Below, one piece after another: positions 8,223 to 30,709 of a stretch of DNA of 32,000 nucleotides; position 1 is the first letter of the stretch, and the number at the start of each line of letters is the position of its first letter. Where the stretch lies: the NCBI GenBank assembly GCA_002794465.1, contig MTSL01000046.1, forward strand, positions 2,578 to 34,577, in the 5' to 3' direction. The stretch is from Paramicrosporidium saccamoebae KSL3 (Eukaryota > Fungi > Cryptomycota). A program made the translations under genes and the position numbers. The notes under the pieces are model-generated. The model had not been told where the DNA came from. It saw nothing but the letters and a program-made list of their open reading frames with translations, and did no database searches.

Positions 8223-8338
8223 GGTAACTGAGTGTGGGTGATAAATTGTAAGGTATTCGAGTGTGAGTCGTATATTGTGAGGTATTTGAGTGTGAGCCGC
8301 AAATTGTGAGGTATTCGAGTATGAGCGGTAAATTGAGG
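8221..8338. repeat. 29-bp minisatellite x4 starting at the stop codon of paralog 3
   Basis: Units gaggtaactgagtgtgggtgataaattgt / aaggtattcgagtgtgagtcgtatattgt / gaggtatttgagtgtgagccgcaaattgt / gaggtattcgagtatgagcggtaaatt. Confidence 0.85.
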
Positions 8339-10673: not shown

Positions 10674-11548
10674 TTACTTTCGCTTCTTAGTCTCTTTTCC
10701 ACGGTGCAAAGACCTTCGTGCTAGCGATCTCCCCAGTTTATAGAACCAGTAAAAATTGAGAATGTGTGTAGTCAGGTTGGCGGCAAGAGACCCAATGGTC
10801 CAGGGCAACGGCACGCGGTGGTGCATGGTATACAGATCTTTTAGGAATCGATAGGTCAAGTAAGAGCCGAAAGTAAGACGGACTCCTACGTAGGCAAGCA
10901 GCCCACAGATGTCATTCAGAATGATTGCCTTTCCACCCCCGTAGCCCAACTACACCAATCACTCATCAAGTCGAGTTAATTTACCTTTTCCAGAAACCAG
11001 TGCATGTCAACAAATATAGTGCTAAACTCGAACAAGAGGAATCTGCTCGTTGGGTACATCATGAATGGCCGATAGCAGCTGAGAATCCCTCCTAATCCGA
11101 GAAGGGCATGCACAAAGAACCCTTTTCCATACTGACGAATATACCAAGCACAGCACATTACATCCCACAAAAAATAGCCCACGGAGAAGGAGAACATGGA
11201 CCCAAATTCACGAGAGTATCCAAACACGCGGTCTTCGATAGTGTGCGCCAGCTCGTTATCATACCACAGACTGAGACTCCAACAACAAACAATGATGGCG
11301 TGGAGGAAGGAGGCTGCCATGTGGCCCCACTTGGCGCGCGCGTGCTCGTCATCCTTCAGCTTCTTCTTCTTGGAGTACCGCACCAAACTTGGAGCAATAA
11401 AGTAGTACGATATCCAAGAGGTGGCCGTAAAGAGCACAAATGCTACCAGAATCTGGTAGCCATGTTGCGGAAGCTCCTTTAGACGGTTCTGTTTGGACAG
11501 AAACTTTTCAATAGCGGTCCGAATGGTTGCATGTATTGACTCGCCCAT
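10674..11548 (-). CDS. TLC (TRAM/LAG1/CLN8) domain membrane protein, TMEM56/Tda4-like
   Basis: Exons 11548-10985 and 10949-10674 with a 35-bp GT-AG intron. Multi-TM protein with SFLHAIIV, FSVGYFLWD, FFVHA and FEFSTIFVDMHWFL motifs. Confidence 0.85.
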
Positions 11549-11736
11549 CGTACGGACCAAAAAAGGAACGGACCAGGCTCGCAGCGTGGGCCAATAAAAG
11601 CCCGCCACCACGGAACAAGACCTGCTAGTTTCACAATAAAGATGGGAATATGACTATTTTCTTTGAATGAATATACCGTCAAGGACTGCGCAAAGCATAT
11701 AACTGTGCAAGCAGGCGTAGCAGCCCTGGGTTTTGG

Positions 11737-12186
11737 ATGAATTGGACACGGATTCTCTTGGAAGTAAGCATGGCCATCCAATTTACTATCCTCTGCATAG
11801 TCGGTGAAGAAGCAGATACAGAAGCTAATGTCTACGAGAAAGCCCATCGTCATCGACAAGCAAGATTTGGTAGAATCGACAATGAAGGGTTCGGGACCAG
11901 GTAACTCGGTTGGTTGGCGGTGCTAATGCAAGGTGGACAGGCTGTAAATAAGACGAATAATGCCATATGCATACTGCACAAGCCCACAGGCATACAGGTG
12001 AGGAGTCACAAGACCAGAAGCCTGGAGCTCAATCGGAAGGATGCGCTTCGACATTTGGAAGCGCAACTTGACGATATGATAAATGGTGCTGCTAGCAAAT
12101 CGAATATTGCCACATTGAGGCTCCGGGAGCGGAAGCGAGTCCAATCGAGTAAAAGCAAAAAGAAGCACATTACCCTCGAGACGTGA
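11737..12186 (+). CDS. Mitochondrial peptidyl-tRNA hydrolase / ribosome-rescue factor (C12orf65/mtRF-R-like, RF-1 domain)
   Basis: Exons 11737-11763, 11801-11900 and 11933-12186 (introns of 37 and 32 bp) give 126 aa. Splicing restores KGSGPGGQAVNKT, followed by HKPTGIQV and RSLELNRK, a basic C-tail and a presequence-like N-terminus. Confidence 0.85.
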
Positions 12187-12467: not shown

Positions 12468-12554
12468 ATAGTACAATATACAATATCAAAGAGTAAGAGT
12501 ATATCTAACGGGCCAAAAATCCCAAGAGTCTTTATCACAATCCGCTTATAATCC

Positions 12555-12607
12555 TCATACAACGCCCATATTATCTTCACACAACGCCCATATTATCTTC
12601 ATACAAC
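12555..12607. repeat. 22-bp tandem repeat x2.4
   Basis: tcatacaacgcccatattatct / tcacacaacgcccatattatct / tcatacaac, upstream of DID2. Confidence 0.8.
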
Positions 12608-12734: not shown

Positions 12735-13625
12735 ATGGGACTCGAACGTAAGCACTGATGACAGAGTATTTAAGGGTCATGTAGAGCAGCTATTCACCAT
12801 GAAGGCACATTGTAACTCGAGTTTCTAATATTGGTTAGCTTGCGAGCAAGCAAATGGCCCGCAACGCCAGAAAATGCGAAAAGGAGGAGGCCGCACAGAA
12901 AATCCAGGTTAAAAAGGTGCCCATCCCACCACCTGTATTCACACAAGGTAGGCTATAGAAAAGGGCAATCCGGAGATGGCAAGGATATATGCTACCAACG
13001 CTATCCGGAAAAAGAACGAAGCCCTCAACTATTTGAAGATGAGTGCCCGTTTCGACACGGTGGCCTCTCAAATCAGCTCTGCAGTCACGACAGGAATGGT
13101 AACAACAATTTTGGGGCAACTAACCTAGTTTAGGTACCAAAGATTCTGGGCAAACTAACCTGGTTTAGGTACCAACGATTCTGGGGGTCTAAGCTAGTTT
13201 AGGTATCAACAATTTTGGGGAATCTAACTTATTTTAGGTGTCAAAGACCATGTCCAACGTTGTCTCTGGATTGGAAAAGGCCGTTGCTACTGACAATGTC
13301 GAAAAAGTATACCCTCGCCGTATCAGTGGGTTTGATCATTCTGTAGATGTCTCTAATGATGGACCAATTTGAAGAACAATGTGGAATGCTCAACACTCAG
13401 ACGTCCTACATGGACAGTGCCATGTCTACTAGCGGTCAGCTGACCACGCCGATGGACCAAGTGGATGAGCTCATCCAGCAAGTCGGCGATTCTCATGGCC
13501 TAGACGTCAAGATGGCACTCAGAAGCTCCGAAGCGCCTTCTGGATCGCCAATTGCAAATGCCTCAGTTGCTGATCAGAATGACGAACTGACCCAACGCCT
13601 CAATGCCCTACGAGGCGGAATTTGA
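12735..13625 (+). CDS. DID2: ESCRT-III accessory subunit Did2/Vps46/CHMP1 (Snf7 family)
   Basis: Exons 12735-12747, 12785-12804, 12839-12916, 12952-13098, 13238-13306 and 13347-13625 give 201 aa: [19 protein letters not shown]...[26 protein letters not shown]...MDQFE...[11 protein letters not shown]. Intron 2 is GC-AG. Confidence 0.92.
13099..13237 (+). repeat. Composite intron made of four tandem mini-intron units (35+35+34+35 bp)
   Basis: Units are 13099-13133, 13134-13168, 13169-13202 and 13203-13237. Each starts GTA, carries CTAAC (CTAAG in unit 3) and ends TTTAG. Confidence 0.92.
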
Positions 13626-16386: not shown

Positions 16387-18031
16387 ATGCCGACGCCCGC
16401 CACATTGTCCGCCAGCGAATTTGTAGTTGACCGAGTGAGTCATTGGAAGTCGCTCAATTCAGACGAAAAGAGTCGTCAGGAGGCAATCCTCGAGTTTCTG
16501 AATACCGAAACCACCTATTACCAAAGACTAACCATTCTTCACGAGGCACGCTGACGGCGAGACTTTTGTCATCATTTTAGGTTTTCTACCAAGCCTGTGA
16601 GAATATTTTAACCTCTGCAGAACGCAGTGTGATCTTTCAAAACCTGGACGAGCTATTACTGCGGGCCGGATTGTTGCTGTCCGACCTCAAGTGTCGCCAA
16701 GCCCAGGAAAAGGGGATCGTCTCGTCAGTGTCAGATCTTTATTTGGCGCACTTGAAAGATTTCAGTTGCTTTCGCAAGTATTGTATGGGACATGAGGAAG
16801 CGTCCAAGATGCTCAGACAAAAATTGGATTCGAATTCCCGCTTTTCCAAGCTTGTAAGGGTACATGAAATTGCATCCGACTCAGGTTTTAGGAATTGATC
16901 AATGATCCACGCTGCTCCAGTCTGGATCTAGCCAGTTTCCTGCTGGAGCCAGTCCAGCGACTTGCTCGGTACCCGCTTCTTTTGAAGCAAGTATGGATTG
17001 GTGGGCATTCTGATATTGTAGATTTTGCATTTTACCGATAGAACCCAGTCTGATCACCAGGTCACTCTGGAGGCCGTGCAAGCCAGCGAAGCCTTTCTGC
17101 AGGACGTAAACGAATCTGTTCGTCTACACCAGTCTCAGGCCCGCCTTGGGTCCCTACAGAGTCAAATTCTGGTCCAGCTCGATGGTGATGTATCATTCGT
17201 CTTTTTAATTCCCAATGATTTCGACAGAACGACGTTGGATTTGAACTAGTGGGCTCTACCCGAAAGAACCTTCCTCGATGCATCTTTATGGAGGGGACCT
17301 TGTGGAAATGCAGGAGCAAGCGCAAGATTCACGCACTGCTTTTGACCGATATGCTGGTCCTCTTGGAACAGGAGGGGACAAAATATTCATTTTATCGTCC
17401 CGTATGCTCTTGATCATTTGTTCATGTCAATAGCCCCTCAGCATTGAAGAGATTACTCTGCGTGACGTCAACTTTGGCGCGCTTAAATTGAAACTCGCGG
17501 GCGGGTTAAAGAGTAAACTAGTCTGCCTGCATGTCATGCATTATAGAGGAGTGTTGTTTTGAAATTTCTCGTGGAGCCGAATCGATATGCGTTGCAACAG
17601 AAATGCTGGCAGAGAGACAAAAATGGTTCCGCGAGTTTGAAAAGGTCAAGACAAGACCAGTTCCACAGGACAATCTGATGCTTCCCTGTATTGGCACGGT
17701 TCGAGTTACTGTTCTCTCTGGAAAGAATATCCCATGTGACATGGAGTCTTATTGTTCTCTCGACCTGAATATTCAAAACACCGAGACCCGTCCAGTAGGG
17801 GGATTGAATCCCATCTGGAATCAATCTGAAGTGCTCTGCATGGCTTCATTTGATGATGTCCTGCGGCTTTCCGTATTTAATTATAAGAAATATGCTCCCA
17901 ACGAGCTCTTGGGATTCAAGGATCTGTCGCTTGATTTTTTGGAATACTACAACGAGCGTTCCACCGAGCCCATGACCGTGCCAGTAGGATCTGGTAGTGT
18001 TACCATTTCCTTCCAATATCGCCAACTGTAA
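16387..18031 (+). CDS. RhoGEF DH-PH-C2 protein (resembles the intersectin C-terminal module)
   Basis: Exons 16387-16545, 16581-16859, 16892-16990, 17022-17189, 17228-17401, 17434-17512 and 17547-18031 give about 480 aa. DH motifs RQEAILEFLNTETTY and SFLLEPVQRLARYPLLL; PH motif EGTLWK...LLTDMLVL; C2 motif VRVTVLSGKN...NPIWNQ...LSVFNY. Intron 1 is GC-AG. The start codon is tentative. Confidence 0.85.
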
Positions 18032-19442: not shown

Positions 19443-20498
19443 ATGAAGATTGTCCTGCCGCTACTTTTATTGTCATTCTGTAGCGGCGAAAATGCTGATG
19501 GCGGCTATCGACTGTCACTAAAGTCACGCAAAATGCCCGTCACTGTAATCCCTCCGCAGTATATGGGTGGTAAGGAATCGCCGGTGGTAAAGCTGGCGGA
19601 TTCTGGAATTCTGGAGATGGAAATCAACTTGGGCCAGCCCGCCCGTTCCGTCAACATGCTCTACGACTGCGCTGGGAGGGAAACTTTTCTCCCTGCTTCA
19701 CTGACCGCCAAGGGGACATCCTATTCCATGGTTATTACGCATCGTGGGACCTGGCGTGATTTGTTGAATATCGGCGGCCTCAAGGTCGAGCAAGAATTCC
19801 AATTCTATGATGAAGAAGTGGGCCGACTCGGGCTCAATGTGGACCAGACTGGCCAGCCGCTGTTCAACAACATTGTAAACAGACGGATGCTTGGGATGCA
19901 AATCTTTTCAACCCTTCTGACACGAGTCAATGGACAGCTGATGGGCGAATTGCGGGTTGGGGAACTTGAGAAGAGCTTAAAAGGTGCTCAACTGCGCTAT
20001 AACCAAGTACTGCTGGACGAATTGGGCTGGTCGCTCCGAGTCTTTGATGTCCGAATGGGGCAAGAATATCTTGGCTACAAGGGCCGTGTTGTGATTGACA
20101 CTCTGACTCCCTATGTTGTGGTCCCCGTGGTAATCTTTACCGCCATTGCCCAGCTCCTCAAGATGCCCATCATGCTGGACAAGGATGTCCTTATGGCAAA
20201 GCCTGTGCACTGCAAAGGTCTCCGCAAGCTCCCTCCACTTCACTTTGCCATTGAGACGGACGAATTTGTTTGGGATAGTGCCCACTACATTATATCCACG
20301 GACGACGGCCAATGTCGTCTGGCATTGGCAGGCTTTGATGCACATGTTGATGGCATGCCCGTATGGATCTTTGGAACGAGTTTTTTTGTGGATCGCGCAA
20401 CCGTCTTTGATTTACAAACTGGACACATTGGACTGACGGATTATGAGGCAGACGCGCGCCAGGACGAAGTGGTTATGCTCGTTAAAGATGCTCTGTAA
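19443..20498 (+). CDS. Secreted pepsin-fold (A1) aspartic-protease-like protein with degenerate active-site motifs
   Basis: Signal peptide MKIVLPLLLLSFCSG at ATG 19443. EINLGQPARSVNMLYDCAG, VVIDTLT and WIFGTSFF...VFDLQTGHIGL align with the pepsin scaffold. Confidence 0.75.
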   Translation: MKIVLPLLLLSFCSGENADGGYRLSLKSRKMPVTVIPPQYMGGKESPVVKLADSGILEMEINLGQPARSVNMLYDCAGRETFLPASLTAKGTSYSMVITHRGTWRDLLNIGGLKVEQEFQFYDEEVGRLGLNVDQTGQPLFNNIVNRRMLGMQIFSTLLTRVNGQLMGELRVGELEKSLKGAQLRYNQVLLDELGWSLRVFDVRMGQEYLGYKGRVVIDTLTPYVVVPVVIFTAIAQLLKMPIMLDKDVLMAKPVHCKGLRKLPPLHFAIETDEFVWDSAHYIISTDDGQCRLALAGFDAHVDGMPVWIFGTSFFVDRATVFDLQTGHIGLTDYEADARQDEVVMLVKDAL

Positions 20499-20669
20499 AT
20501 ATTTAGAATACAATAAAGATGCTCTGTAGATATTTAGAATACAATCAAGAGGCTCTGTAAATATTTATAATACAATAAAGGTGCTCTGTAGATATTTATA
20601 ATACAATCAAGATGCTCTGCAGATATTTATAATGCAATCAAAATGCTCTGTAGATATTTAGAATACAAA
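20484..20669. repeat. 31-bp minisatellite x6 that includes the stop codon and AATAAA
   Basis: Consensus (a/c)aagatgctctgta(g/a)atattta(g/t)aatacaat. Unit 1 encodes K-D-A-L-stop of the pepsin-like gene. Confidence 0.92.
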
Positions 20670-23677: not shown

Positions 23678-23827
23678 TGCCATGGCATGATATTGCACAA
23701 CACGGCAGGGTACTCCACGACAAAGCACAACACAACACTACACAGCACAGCACAACACATCACACCAAACCACACCACACCACATCACACCAAACCACAC
23801 CACACCACATCACATCACCATACAACA
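23678..23827. repeat. Degenerate pentamer array (NNNCA/NNNTA)x30
   Basis: The 150 bp parse into 30 pentamers, all ending CA (27) or TA (3). It includes a 25-bp repeat catcacaccaaaccacaccacacca x2. Confidence 0.85.
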
Positions 23828-24935: not shown

Positions 24936-27506
24936 GGATCAACATTTCGTCGCTCCTTTCCGAGGGTGGTCGTGGCTTCAGTTGCTTTTGTACGGTCGGG
25001 GAGTTTTATGCGCTTGCGGCTGTCGTCCTGGTTGAATGAGAGACCAGCAAGGATGTTTTCAGTTCCAGATGGCTTCCTGACGACGCCAGGAATAAAAGCC
25101 GATGGCTTCCAGACCTTTGCAGGACTGACGCCGGTCTGTAATGCCTGTGATTTCTGTGGGGTCCCAGGAATAACAACTTCCTCCTCCTCGATGGTTGTCT
25201 TGGTCGTCTTTTTTGATCCAGCCGATTTGGTTGGTTTCACCGTCTCGGCTTTGGGTTCAATCGATTTGCCAACTTTTTCTGGTTCGGTTCGTTTGGAAGT
25301 CTTGGTAGCTTCTGGTTCGGCTTGTTTGACAGTCTCGGCAACTTCTGGTTCAATCTTTTGTAATTCAACCTCTGCCTTTCTTGGTCGCCCTCTTGGCTTT
25401 GGTGCAGCTTTGATGGGCTCTGTTACCCGCCGAAGTCTACTAACGATTGGTTCAACATTTGCTGCAGGCTTGGTCGACTGCTTACCTGAATGTTTAGCCA
25501 GCTGCTTAGCCGGATGCTTAACCGGACTATCCACTACGCTTTCTGCACCTGCCTCATCCTCTACACTGGTATCACTCTCAGACTCCACAGGGGCAATCTT
25601 TGACTTTTTGGCAACCACTGGCTTTGCAATAATTGAGGAAGCCTCCTTTTCTTTAATCAAGACTCGTAAATCTTCCATCACATTTTGCATCGCATCTCGC
25701 TCGTGCTGCCACTTTTCCTCCATTGCCTTGATCGTCCTGCTGATCTCTGGGGACTGGGGTTTTCTGGACAAGACTTCAAGTTTTGCCTGTAGAGTCACGT
25801 TCTCAATCTTCAGGGCACCCAGCTTGGACTCTAGCTCTTTTACTGTGGTCTGGAATGTATCTGCTTTGCTCTCAAGACTGGCAAGCTTCTTTTGAAGCAT
25901 AACCTCGGACGATTTTGTCTTTTTGAGGTCAGCTTCAAGCTCTGCCAACTCTTTGGATTGTCCCTTTAATCGTTTCGAATCCTCTGCCGAGGTAGACTCG
26001 ACACTGGACTTTGCCTTTTCCAAGGCGGAAATTTGCATTTCCAGTGTCTGGATCTTGCTTGTGGCCGAGGAAAGGCTTGATTGCAGACTCTGCTTTTCCT
26101 TCTGCGTCACTTGGAGACTCTTCTGGGCAGTATCGAGCCGGCCAGTTAGACCATCAATTTCTGCCTTGAATTCGTTCTCAATCTTTTCCTTTTCCGACAC
26201 GGACGAACGAAGGCGCTCCTCCAACGCCGACAGCTGATGCTGCTTAATCTCCATTTCTGCAAGAAGCAAGAGCCGTTCGTGTTCCATACATACTAGATCA
26301 ATCTCGCACTGACGAATTCGCTCGTGAACCTGCAATCTCTCCATGCTGAGACGGCTCATTTCGTATTCAAATTCCCAATTCTGGCGGCTTCCTTTAAATC
26401 CAGAAGTTTCCTGCTCTGATAACAGGTCTTCGCGTTGAAGTTCTGTCAGATGTAGGGCCTTCTTTAGCTGTTTCAGCTCGCGACGAACGGCGCGGTGTTC
26501 GAGTTCAAGCCGACCATGCGTTTCAACGAGGACAGCGAGTTCGCACATTTCGGGCGATTCGAGGAGCGGAGTAGGATGATTCTTGATCCGTCGCATAGCC
26601 GAGAGGAGTTGAGTAAAGCTTTGTAAATGACGAGCAACTGCGGTGCGAGGTAAATCAGCCACCACCAGAGTCATCCACGAACCACCAAAACACGGCTCAA
26701 TCAGCGAAGAAAGGAAGGACGACTGTGTCCGCGTGTCTTGTGCAACGACTTCTTGGCTCAGATTTAGAATTGTAGACCCTAACATGTTAGTTCGCCAAGG
26801 TTCAGCGTTTTTACAGAGTTGGGCGAGCGACTTTTCTAGCTGAGATCCAGTTGAGATGCAGCCCAGATCGGCAAGCACAAGAGTAGACATGGCTCCGGGA
26901 AGAGTAGTGTCGCTTGGTCGCACAAACAAGCGTACCAACAAGACACAGGGTAGAGAATAGCCCTGTTGCAGCGAGTCAATGATAGACTTTGTCGAGTCAG
27001 CTGCGCCAAGAGGACTCCAGTCTTCCAATTTTTGCACGTCTGCCAACAATTTCCGTTCATAGGACGCCAAGTCAATACAACTGGTGTCACTAACGCCAAA
27101 CATGGAGAACGAAAGCGAAATATTGTGTTCTTTTTGCTCATCCAGCTTTTCTTGGAGCAATTCCAAAATGTGCTGGAGTAGAGTACAGAACGAGCCCACC
27201 TTTTCCGCTTCTCCTCCCATGCAGATGACGCTGCACGAAATTCCATGGAGTAGGTTTTGCAGCAGTTTTGGGATATTGGCTTTTGCGGAGAAGAGCGGCT
27301 CTACGGGATTGTCCAAGCAAAGGTCGTATTCATGACTAAAGTTTGATCAAGTGACATTGGGAATACGTAGTGGAGGACTCTTCGGTGCTCACCACAACTG
27401 CACTGCCACCGCTTAATTCGATAGCAGCTCTTGACGCTGGGAGGTGTCCAACAATGCTGGTGGCATCTTTGACGCGCACCGCTACCTGTACATTCGCCTG
27501 GCGCAT
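24881..27506 (-). CDS. Highly divergent kinesin-like protein (degenerate motor domain, coiled coil and low-complexity tail)
   Basis: Exon 27506 (or 27521)-27367 contains ANVQVAVRVK; a 31-bp intron follows at 27366-27336, then exon 27335-24881. GISCSVICMG, LVLADLG, SSFLSSLIEPCFGGSWMTLVV and AMRRIKNHP correspond to kinesin GYNGTIFAYG, LVDLAGSE, SKLTRLLQDSLGGNSKT and RAKNIKNKP. Confidence 0.75.
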
Positions 27507-27546: not shown

Positions 27547-28446
27547 CTAACGGTAAATCACGAATATTATGAAAGCTGCCAGCGCCAGTAGTAGGATAAT
27601 AATGAGGACAGCTGTGAAAATTGACGAGTAAGAGGCCGATTTCTTGCGTCGTTCTTCAGTGGGATTCTGTGCCTCTACATCAACGAGACCGATGCCGCTG
27701 CGATCTGCCGATGGCCCGATCACGATGGGCTTGACCTCTGGGGAGCTATTGCTATCGTCAAATTTGACACTTTTCTTAATGGGTGGCTCGTCGATGGCGA
27801 CTTTTGTGTTAGTTGGGGACGTTAAGGGGACTGGCGAGGTTGAGGGGACTGGTGAGGTAGAGGGTGATGAGGTAGAGGGTGGTGAGGGGAGCGGTAAGGC
27901 TGAGGATGATGAGGGGGCTGGTGAGGTTGGGGGTGAGGTAGAGGGTGATGAGGGGGTTGGAGGAACTGGAGAAACTGGTGCGGTCGAGGGTACGGTGACT
28001 TTGTCACTAATTTCCACCTGTGTCATTTCTTCAGGATTTGCAAAAGTATCGTCTTTGTCATTACTGTGATCAGATTGGGGTGAAGTGGCCTTTCCTGGTG
28101 TTCGGATACCAGGAGCATCTGTAGCAATCCATTCCGGACTCTTTAGCTCTGGAGACACTGCTATGGGGAAAATTGGCATCGGAGACGACAATGGGGACAC
28201 TGCCACTGGAGATGTTGGAGGTATTCTTTTTGGTGCTACATCTGTATGCTCCGAATCTGAATCCTTTTCCGTTCCCATCACTTTGTTCGCTCTAGCCGTT
28301 TCATCTACTTGTTCAATGGGGTCCTCGAACACTGGTTCCTCATATATGGGATGCTCTTTATGCTGCCGATTATACAGACTGTCAATAAAGTCGTCAATCT
28401 TTCCAAATCGGCGAACATTGTGCGACTTTTCCCCCGGATCGCTCAT
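27547..28446 (-). CDS. Hypothetical Pro/Ser/Thr-rich protein with a C-terminal transmembrane anchor
   Basis: First ATG is at 28446 (frame open to 28668, GTG). PST repeats (STSPVP, PSSPST), then RRKK followed by a hydrophobic helix ending 2 residues before the stop. Confidence 0.65.
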   Translation of the reverse strand: MSDPGEKSHNVRRFGKIDDFIDSLYNRQHKEHPIYEEPVFEDPIEQVDETARANKVMGTEKDSDSEHTDVAPKRIPPTSPVAVSPLSSPMPIFPIAVSPELKSPEWIATDAPGIRTPGKATSPQSDHSNDKDDTFANPEEMTQVEISDKVTVPSTAPVSPVPPTPSSPSTSPPTSPAPSSSSALPLPSPPSTSSPSTSPVPSTSPVPLTSPTNTKVAIDEPPIKKSVKFDDSNSSPEVKPIVIGPSADRSGIGLVDVEAQNPTEERRKKSASYSSIFTAVLIIILLLALAAFIIFVIYR

Positions 28447-29472: not shown

Positions 29473-30709
29473 ATGGTATTGGAGGGACTAAAACGAGCTG
29501 AGCAGTTTATTACCGTTCTCCGGAATGCCGGCTACCGCAACGAAGCGGGCAGAACGCTAAAGCCGGAGCATTTGGACCACGAATTTGAGAGTCGTCCAAC
29601 TACAGCGGCATTGCTGGCATTGGCGGATGGACTACGAGCGCGTGTCCTGTCCGAAGTAGAAGTACTGCAGTACCAACCTGAATTGCTGCTGAAAGTTTAG
29701 GTTACAACATCTTGCAAATTTGGGACTGTTGGACGGCTTACTGGAGGGCCTGGACGAGGCAGAGCAACCAAAAGTGATGCCTACTAGTGAAAAAATTGAG
29801 CGACTCTATGAATTGAATGGACAACTTGAAAGACTACTGGATGCCCAGTCCATTTCTGAACAGACTTGTCTCGCGGAATTAGAAAAGCTGCCTTTAGTGG
29901 AGAGGGTTGAGACGATAGATGTGCTTAGCATTACACAGTCTAAATCGGAACCGCTTGACATGCTGATAGCTGAGTATGACGGACTGCAAGAGCAGATAAA
30001 GGAAACTCTTGACAAGTGCTTTGAAAAATTGTTCACGCCGCTGGACACTACAGACCCTGACGAGCCGGTGCTACGATTCAAGACAATATCCAACTCTGAC
30101 CTGATACGACAACCTTGGCACCCTGAAGATTATGCATTTTATGAGAGTAAAATTACCAAGGCCATCGATGCATTACGCATGTATGGATTCAAGCTGTGCA
30201 TTGAGGAATTGGTGCACGGCGATCAACAGATTCGTGCACGGAGAAGCGCTTATCAAGCCGAGATGTATTCTCAAATCACAGCACTACAATTGCGACGTCT
30301 TTGTTTGGGAACCATCTTTCACGAGGCTCTGAACAACCTTGGCTCGCACCTTCAAAAGTCTTGCAATGAGTTGCTGGGATCCTTGAACTCGGCAAAGTCA
30401 AAAATGTCGCCCGTTTCTACTTTTGCGCAATACACAGTAAATGACCCTTTGACAAGCGTTGCCATCAGGCGTCCAAGCCATACGCACCGGATCGAAGACC
30501 ATGTAAAGAGGCTGAAAAGTCTTGAATCTTCCATTGCTCAAGTTAGTCATCTAAGTCTATGTTTCTTAAACGACGCAGCTGAAGTCGAACCACTGCCCCT
30601 ATCCGTCAAGCATGAAGAATCGGCTCTTCGATCTATTACTATGGAAATGTCAGAGATGCTTTCTCTTAATGCCACTGAAGCAGAACGAGTGCGTCTAATG
30701 TCTAAATAA
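29473..30709 (+). CDS. HAUS3: HAUS augmin-like complex subunit 3
   Basis: Exons 29473-29669 and 29701-30709 (31-bp intron) join two track ORFs into 401 aa. EQFITVLRNAGY...L..EHLDHEFE...VLSEVE...LEGLDEA parallels human HAUS3 EFVETLKKIGY...EDFDWLFE...VLSERE...LEGAALDEA from memory. Confidence 0.7.

Follow-up and report, generated by a model that had tools for sequence, protein, structure and literature searches.

The analysis concerns a stretch of 32,000 nucleotides (nt), referred to below as the window, from Paramicrosporidium saccamoebae KSL3 (contig MTSL01000046.1, assembly GCA_002794465.1). The species lives as a parasite in the nuclei of amoebae and belongs to a sister lineage of the microsporidia. 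Window and contig are identical, with 0 mismatches over 20,772 nt. The window carries on its forward strand the gene DID2/CHMP1, the coding region of which spans 12735-13625 and, in a spliced model of six exons, encodes a protein of 201 amino acids (aa). The fourth intron of this gene (13099-13237, 139 nt) consists of four head-to-tail copies of a unit with the splice signals of a whole intron, and this array is the subject of the present analysis. The coding model was assembled by hand from sequence and homology, with the ATG at 12735 and the stop codon ending at 13625. Its product is assigned to DID2/CHMP1, an ESCRT-III protein of the Snf7 family, by domain cover (Pfam PF03357, E = 4.6e-9, profile positions 6-167 of 171), by named matches, all of the CHMP1/DID2 type and the best being 'Charged multivesicular body protein 1 [Paramicrosporidium saccamoebae]', and by synteny with two metagenomic relatives, L008 and L014, in the order RPL9, TLC-domain protein, DID2, Sas10, NF-YB. 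The spliced 201-aa product was absent among the best protein matches, and no transcript-derived sequence of P. saccamoebae was present in the collections searched; stranded poly-A RNA-seq of the species (2x125) has been published (Quandt et al. 2017).

The four units measure 35, 35, 34 and 35 nt, and the edges of the array are exactly those of intron 4. Tandem Repeats Finder placed the repeat at 13098-13239, with a period of 35, 4.1 copies and 79% matches. On the forward strand, unit 1 occupies 13099-13133 (GTAACA...CTAAC...GTTTAG), unit 2 13134-13168 (GTACCA...CTAAC...GTTTAG), unit 3 13169-13202 (GTACCA...CTAAG...GTTTAG), and unit 4 13203-13237 (GTATCA...CTAAC...TTTTAG), with predicted branch adenosines at 13123, 13158, 13192, and 13227, respectively. 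Every unit thus starts with GTA and ends with TTTAG, and the branch-motif A lies 10 nt from its 3' end, matching the other introns of the window. Unit 3 differs from the others by a one-base deletion and by the C-to-G change at the last position of the branch motif. Where the units meet, three internal AG/GT junctions are formed (TTTAG/GTA, the slash marking the boundary), at 13133/13134, 13168/13169, and 13202/13203. The sequence features of a recursive splice site with a zero-nucleotide exon are thereby present: an AG/GT inside an intron, a predicted branch site, and a 5' splice site that could be regenerated. The regenerated sites, ATG/GTACCA and ATG/GTATCA, would resemble donors used elsewhere in the window. 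An earlier note on this stretch had described four units of 34-35 bp with these signals and three AG/GT junctions, and its coordinates and unit sequences were reproduced exactly.

The units share 74-86% pairwise identity, that is, they have diverged by 14-26% (5-9 differences per pair of 35 positions). The order in which they were duplicated is not resolved by these differences. Since the Illumina reads behind the assembly were trimmed to 80 nt and are shorter than the array, the true locus might hold fewer or more units and the array be an assembly artefact, a concern that had also been raised in the earlier note. No exact repeat within the array is, however, longer than 14 nt, and each unit has a sequence of its own; reads or k-mers of at least 15 nt therefore resolve the array unambiguously. 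An artefact is therefore unlikely despite the short reads, and we regard it as the least probable of the explanations considered here. Within the window, abutting intron-like pairs occurred only at the array, while shuffled windows contained 0.06 on average. No structured RNA or snoRNA was detected in intron 4 (no Rfam match; folding z = -0.53). As a single-locus structure, the array is genuine, clean, and unusual.

Exon 4 (12952-13098) ends with ACA GGA ATG (Met86), which places intron 4 in phase 0, and exon 5 (13238-13306) starts with GTG TCA AAG A (Val87). When the exons are joined, the 201-aa protein aligns without a gap over the intron 4 junction (TTGM/VSKTM) to every orthologue. In the earlier note, retention of any single unit was said to shift the frame, with unit 1 also bringing an in-frame stop. 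In the spliced model, all 15 combinations with at least one retained unit give a premature stop, and retention of unit 1 leads to a stop at codon 96. Consequently, the complete 139 nt must leave the mRNA. Stops in every partial product would also be expected if the array served as a regulator, with incomplete removal of the units yielding frame-shifted, stop-containing transcripts whose degradation tunes DID2 output, and the linkage of splicing to nonsense-mediated decay is known in fission yeast. Against this stands the absence of the array in all relatives examined (see below), where one intron or none at the site suffices, and nothing suggests that DID2 needs such control; we consider a regulatory role improbable.

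The remaining introns of the gene, all on the forward strand, are unremarkable in length. Intron 1 (12748-12784, 37 nt, phase 1) and intron 5 (13307-13346, 40 nt) occupy positions common to the orthologue of the chytrid Obelidium mucronatum (L013). Intron 3 (12917-12951, 35 nt) shares its position with the chytrid and with the metagenomic loci L007 and L010, and intron 2 (12805-12838, 34 nt) with the chytrid and L007. Intron 2 is apparently of the GC-AG type (AAG/GCACAT...GGTTAG/CTT), as no GT donor yields the conserved reading frame; at the same position L007 and the chytrid have a GT-AG intron, and the GC could be a base error of the assembly. Outside intron 4 the public DID2 model (P0001, 12854-13625, 176 aa) looks wrong. 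The first two exons are missing from it. Its intron 3 is a 44-nt variant that costs the protein the conserved VKK, its reading frame runs on into intron 5, and a conserved stretch of 18 residues is left out. The gene predictor behind the annotation was trained on Rhizopus, which may explain its poor handling of introns of about 35 nt.

Intron lengths and tandem repeats in the window

To place the array among its neighbors, introns were predicted with a simple exon-chaining gene finder, and the output was checked against homologous proteins from the syntenic locus and for continuity of Pfam domains, which supports the spliced gene models. Apart from the array, 17 introns were placed. Their lengths range over 31-40 nt (median 34, mean 34.0, standard deviation 2.8); most start with GTA and, where a branch motif was found, carry a degenerate one 8-16 nt from the 3' end. 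A perfect CTAAC is present in none of these 17 introns versus three of the four array units. The array is thus about four times as long as a normal intron, and each unit has the size of a typical intron of this genome. The narrow, short range claimed in the earlier note was found again, although it had counted 23 other introns of 30-44 bp and our independent placement gave 17, all of 31-40 nt; its upper bound of 44 nt probably reflects the annotated 44-nt alternative for intron 3. Many ordinary introns of over 100 bp had been named as an observation that would speak against the proposal, and no intron longer than 40 nt other than the array was found in the 32-kb window.

Two intron candidates of 70-71 nt, obtained in a run with a maximum of 75 nt, were rejected. 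They are intergenic and would fuse separate genes, as both upstream proteins have natural C-termini (a tail anchor and a p24-type tail). A run allowing introns of up to 400 nt fused neighboring genes, and its output was discarded. A search for more P. saccamoebae contigs by way of mannosyltransferase paralogues returned matches from other assemblies, and the 32 kb of the window remained the basis of the census.

The window holds several other tandem arrays with periods of 22-33 nt, at 8242-8335, 12547-12607, 20483-20668, and 25277-25351, which indicates that local tandem duplication on this scale is common in the window; arrays with a period of about 30 nt seem to be frequent in the P. saccamoebae genome. 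Three of them are intergenic: 8242-8335 (period 29), 12547-12607 (period 22, just upstream of DID2), and 20483-20668 (period 31, six copies), the last lying between two convergent genes. With 84-89% matches, these three show less divergence than the DID2 array (79%). Of two further repeats, at 27841-27960 and 23726-23818, one is coding and corresponds to a Ser/Pro/Thr-rich part of a tail-anchored protein encoded on the minus strand, and the other is a CACAC-type microsatellite.

Some gene models of the window may also be improved. The TLC-domain (TRAM/LAG1/CLN8) gene annotated on the minus strand at 11022-12054 has a 209-aa product with only a weak Pfam match. An alternative minus-strand model at 10674-11548, with a single intron of 35 nt (10950-10984), gives 280 aa that cover profile positions 1-196 of 198 and match the syntenic orthologue. 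At 16387-18031, RhoGEF and C2, annotated as two genes, may belong to one RhoGEF-PH-C2 gene with six introns of 31-38 nt, in a model that is without the first 40 RhoGEF profile positions. Finally, a 31-nt intron at 29670-29700 starts with GTACCAAC and ends with GTTTAG, like units 2 and 3. Its overall similarity to the units is not significant, and the resemblance may reflect the consensus of intron ends only.

The array site in relatives and the origin of the array

The DID2 locus was recovered from twelve other sources. In L007, a metagenomic locus from a Logan assembly whose protein is 84% identical, a single intron of 68 nt (1744-1811) occupies the same phase-0 boundary (ATG/GT...AG/GTT). 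No significant homology was found between this intron and the array units. Three TGAAT motifs, about 9 nt from one another, occur within it. Compared with P. saccamoebae, L007 has introns of greater length (41-68 nt) and higher AT content, and the end of its contig (2170-2278) is a long GAT/GAC repeat encoding an Asp-rich stretch. None of ten other orthologous loci has an intron at the array site; metagenomes of the Joint Genome Institute (JGI) yielded three distant DID2 loci, all without an intron there. The site is read straight through in L002, L003-L006, and L009 (78-85% identical), in the syntenic L008 and L014 (about 68%), and in L010-L012. The DID2 introns of O. mucronatum coincide with introns 1, 2, 3, and 5 of P. 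saccamoebae; this chytrid has no intron at residues 86/87, and has one 12 codons downstream.

This distribution shows that P. saccamoebae has kept old DID2 introns that its relatives lost. The site of intron 4 predates P. saccamoebae, since it is shared with L007, and the four-fold array is specific to the P. saccamoebae lineage. An AG/GT junction conserved in related species was not found, the relatives being without the array. In the comparison with the orthologous intron that the earlier note had called for, the array is absent in the relatives, and L007 has a single, unrelated intron.

A mobile origin of the units was considered in this context. The AG/GT junctions would be natural targets for introners, the units could be copies of such an element inserted repeatedly at these sites, and the start GTACCAAC and end GTTTAG shared by the intron at 29670-29700 would fit. 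Searches of the window and of loci L001-L009 with blastn-short and an nhmmer profile, however, returned only the four units, and the strict junction pattern had no match in JGI metagenome contigs. The many similar copies at unrelated positions by which introners are recognized were thus not found in the window, the nine related loci, or the JGI contigs, so a mobile element is not supported; the assembly of P. saccamoebae comprises 7.3 Mb. The unit also has neither terminal repeats nor a special fold, and its length of 35 nt is well below that of known introners. Such an origin therefore appears very improbable.

Taken together, the array results from one whole intron having been amplified locally, at a position that had held an intron before. 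The proposal that intron 4 is a tandem amplification of one tiny, complete intron agrees with the repeat detection, with the size of the units, and with the intron census. A single tiny intron at a pre-existing site would have been copied in place until four complete head-to-tail copies were present, probably by replication slippage or unequal exchange aided by the shared G/GT. Indeed, G/GT is found at both boundaries of the intron, which would allow slippage to copy exactly one intron. The earlier note had also seen a microhomology between the start of exon 5 and unit 2. Here, the exon 5 start, GTGTCAAAGA, matched units 1-4 at 6, 8, 7, and 7 of 10 positions, respectively, which reproduces the eight matches with unit 2, and the anchored comparison gave p of about 0.02-0.04. 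In L007, the intron and its own exon 5 matched at 11 of 18 positions when anchored (empirical p = 0.018). Unanchored alignments of the intron with the flanking exons were not significant in either P. saccamoebae or L007; slippage on this microhomology is thus weakly supported, and an origin from duplicated exon sequence is no more than a lead. The offset of the O. mucronatum intron, 12 codons (36 nt, window 13238-13273) downstream of the array site, is about one unit length. This offset and the matches between intron and exon 5 starts may hint, unproven as it is, at intron relocation by tandem duplication.

Routes of intron removal

In each copy, the 5' splice site, the branch site, and the 3' splice site are all still present, and the length is normal for this spliceosome (31-40 nt). 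Any 5' site could therefore be used together with the branch and 3' sites that its own unit provides or with those of a unit further downstream. What remains would be an intact shorter array, joined either to exon 4, with ATG/GTA regenerated, or to exon 5. As the remainder is always a valid shorter array, all routes would give the same mRNA. An intron-definition spliceosome spanning about 35 nt would meet a complete intron of consensus quality before it meets the distal sites, which makes use of an internal junction somewhat likelier. The usual route would then involve at least one internal AG/GT junction and at least two reactions, with exon 4 spliced again from the regenerated ATG/GTA. The earlier note had inferred removal in four separate reactions, and stepwise, recursive removal is plausible. 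We regard removal in two or more reactions as somewhat likelier than a single excision of 139 nt, and put it at about an even chance overall.

The alternative is that the array is an intronic minisatellite, a class whose definition (head-to-tail units of 10-100 nt inside an intron) it fits, and that it is spliced as an ordinary 139-nt intron, with unit 1 supplying the 5' site and unit 4 the branch and the 3' site. In that case, the internal signals would be undecayed relics of a fairly recent duplication, and the tandem arrays of similar period that are common in the window agree with such an origin. One-step removal, on the other hand, requires that three branch and 3' sites of equal or better quality are skipped, and no other intron of more than 40 nt was found in the 32 kb. 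Nor does it need the exact whole-intron register of the units, although the G/GT microhomology could give one; this register is expected if the units are spliced singly, since duplications with extra exon bases would break the frame. We consider one-step removal a serious contender that falls short of an even chance.

The divergence of the units offers a further handle on the two routes. If an internal site is in use, its mutation would strand the products of its neighbors, and the signals would stay intact. Twelve of the 35 aligned columns vary. With the signals preset as GTA, five branch positions, and YAG, 1 of 11 signal columns varies versus 11 of 24 others (Fisher one-sided p = 0.036). 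In a post hoc set of GTA, CTAA, and TTTAG, all 12 columns are unchanged (p = 0.0016), which for a relic of 14-26% divergence is not what would be expected.

Several observations weigh against stepwise removal. The public annotation treats the 139 nt as one intron, and the annotated protein joins TTGM to VSKTM. With the signals preset more narrowly as GT, branch motif, and AG, the deficit of changes gives p = 0.095. Among the 33 unit-sites that one-step splicing would leave free there is one change, for which p ranges from 0.045 to 0.15 with the assumed number of independent changes and is thus not robustly significant, and the non-signal blocks CAA, ATT, and TGGG are invariant as well. The selection on splice signals that the earlier note had proposed is judged on four short sequences, with p values that vary with the definition of the signals, and conservation of the internal signals by selection is suggestive, no more. 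In addition, the census covers the 32-kb window only. L007 splices a 68-nt intron at the very site of the array, so no hard length limit is established, and apparent introns of 41 to about 77 nt occur in DID2 of other relatives. Microsporidia splice one relatively long intron better than their other introns. Lastly, a 3' splice site that abuts a 5' splice site may hinder their simultaneous recognition.

A stricter version of stepwise removal would be that the spliceosome is tuned to about 35 nt, that 139 nt cannot be removed at once, and that the array is taken out in an obligate chain of up to four excisions, passing three zero-length exons. The earlier note had suggested strict intron-definition splicing, which is in line with the narrow lengths in the window and at odds with the 68-nt intron of L007 and the data on long introns in microsporidia; we consider the obligate chain unlikely. 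If it were true, the internal signals would be locked by mutual dependence, as one lost site would strand the products of its neighbors, and tandem duplication of a whole intron would represent a separate path of in-place intron multiplication. The mechanism of duplication, the multi-step route, and selection on the internal signals are what we infer from the sequence.

Both routes bear on the constraint on intron length in genomes with tiny introns and on how introns multiply. Should the units be removed separately, no natural case of recursive splicing would be more compact than this array, which would also be a natural experiment on how intron definition chooses among identical, evenly spaced sites. 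It would follow, too, that in-place amplification of a whole intron can be harmless to the gene and that the copies can persist through mutual dependence. Should they leave in one step, the array would be a harmless intronic minisatellite, and the organism would tolerate introns four times its norm.

Comparison with known systems

[quoted passage not shown] The earlier note had placed it mainly in very long animal introns, which is out of date, since it has also been shown in two fungi: in Schizosaccharomyces pombe SPNCRNA.445 it occurs across a zero-length exon in a 336-nt intron, and in Cryptococcus neoformans BOT1 it splits a 375-nt intron into 210 and 165 nt. These fungal cases come from intron-definition organisms, and the introns are long for their genome. 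As at such ratchet points, a 3' splice site abuts a 5' splice site (AG/GT) within one annotated intron of DID2, and after a first excision the upstream exon would meet a regenerated 5' site. The DID2 intron differs in being only 139 nt long, in having three junctions, and in that its pieces are diverged copies of each other. Known ratchet points, in contrast, are single sites in unrelated intron sequence, conserved across species and proven by RNA, while the DID2 array is absent in the relatives.

Stwintrons (spliceosomal twin introns) and other complex intervening sequences of fungi, described by Flipphi, Fekete and colleagues, are likewise built of more than one U2-type intron unit. They are removed by consecutive reactions and are proposed to stem from small duplications of splice signals, and Lipomyces shows both one-step and two-step removal. 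In a stwintron, however, a signal of the outer intron is split by the inner one, which forces the order of excision, whereas the DID2 units abut with intact signals, are not nested, and would permit any order. The AGGT model of Rogers (potato RdRp, vertebrates, and Drosophila) is similar in that a tandem duplication adds pairs of splice sites and splicing restores the original mRNA. There, exon sequence is duplicated and one copy becomes an intron, while in DID2 an existing intron would have been duplicated whole, and the similarity of unit and exon is limited to the first 10 nt. Introners, too, are sequence-similar introns that multiply, yet they are dispersed, number tens to thousands of copies, and are much longer, while the DID2 unit was found at one locus only.

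In the literature, we found no description of a head-to-tail array of whole spliceosomal introns, and the genome paper of P. saccamoebae never mentions introns. The elements of the DID2 array are known, either as recursion sites or as an intronic minisatellite; what is new is that its pieces are four copies of one complete, minimal intron.
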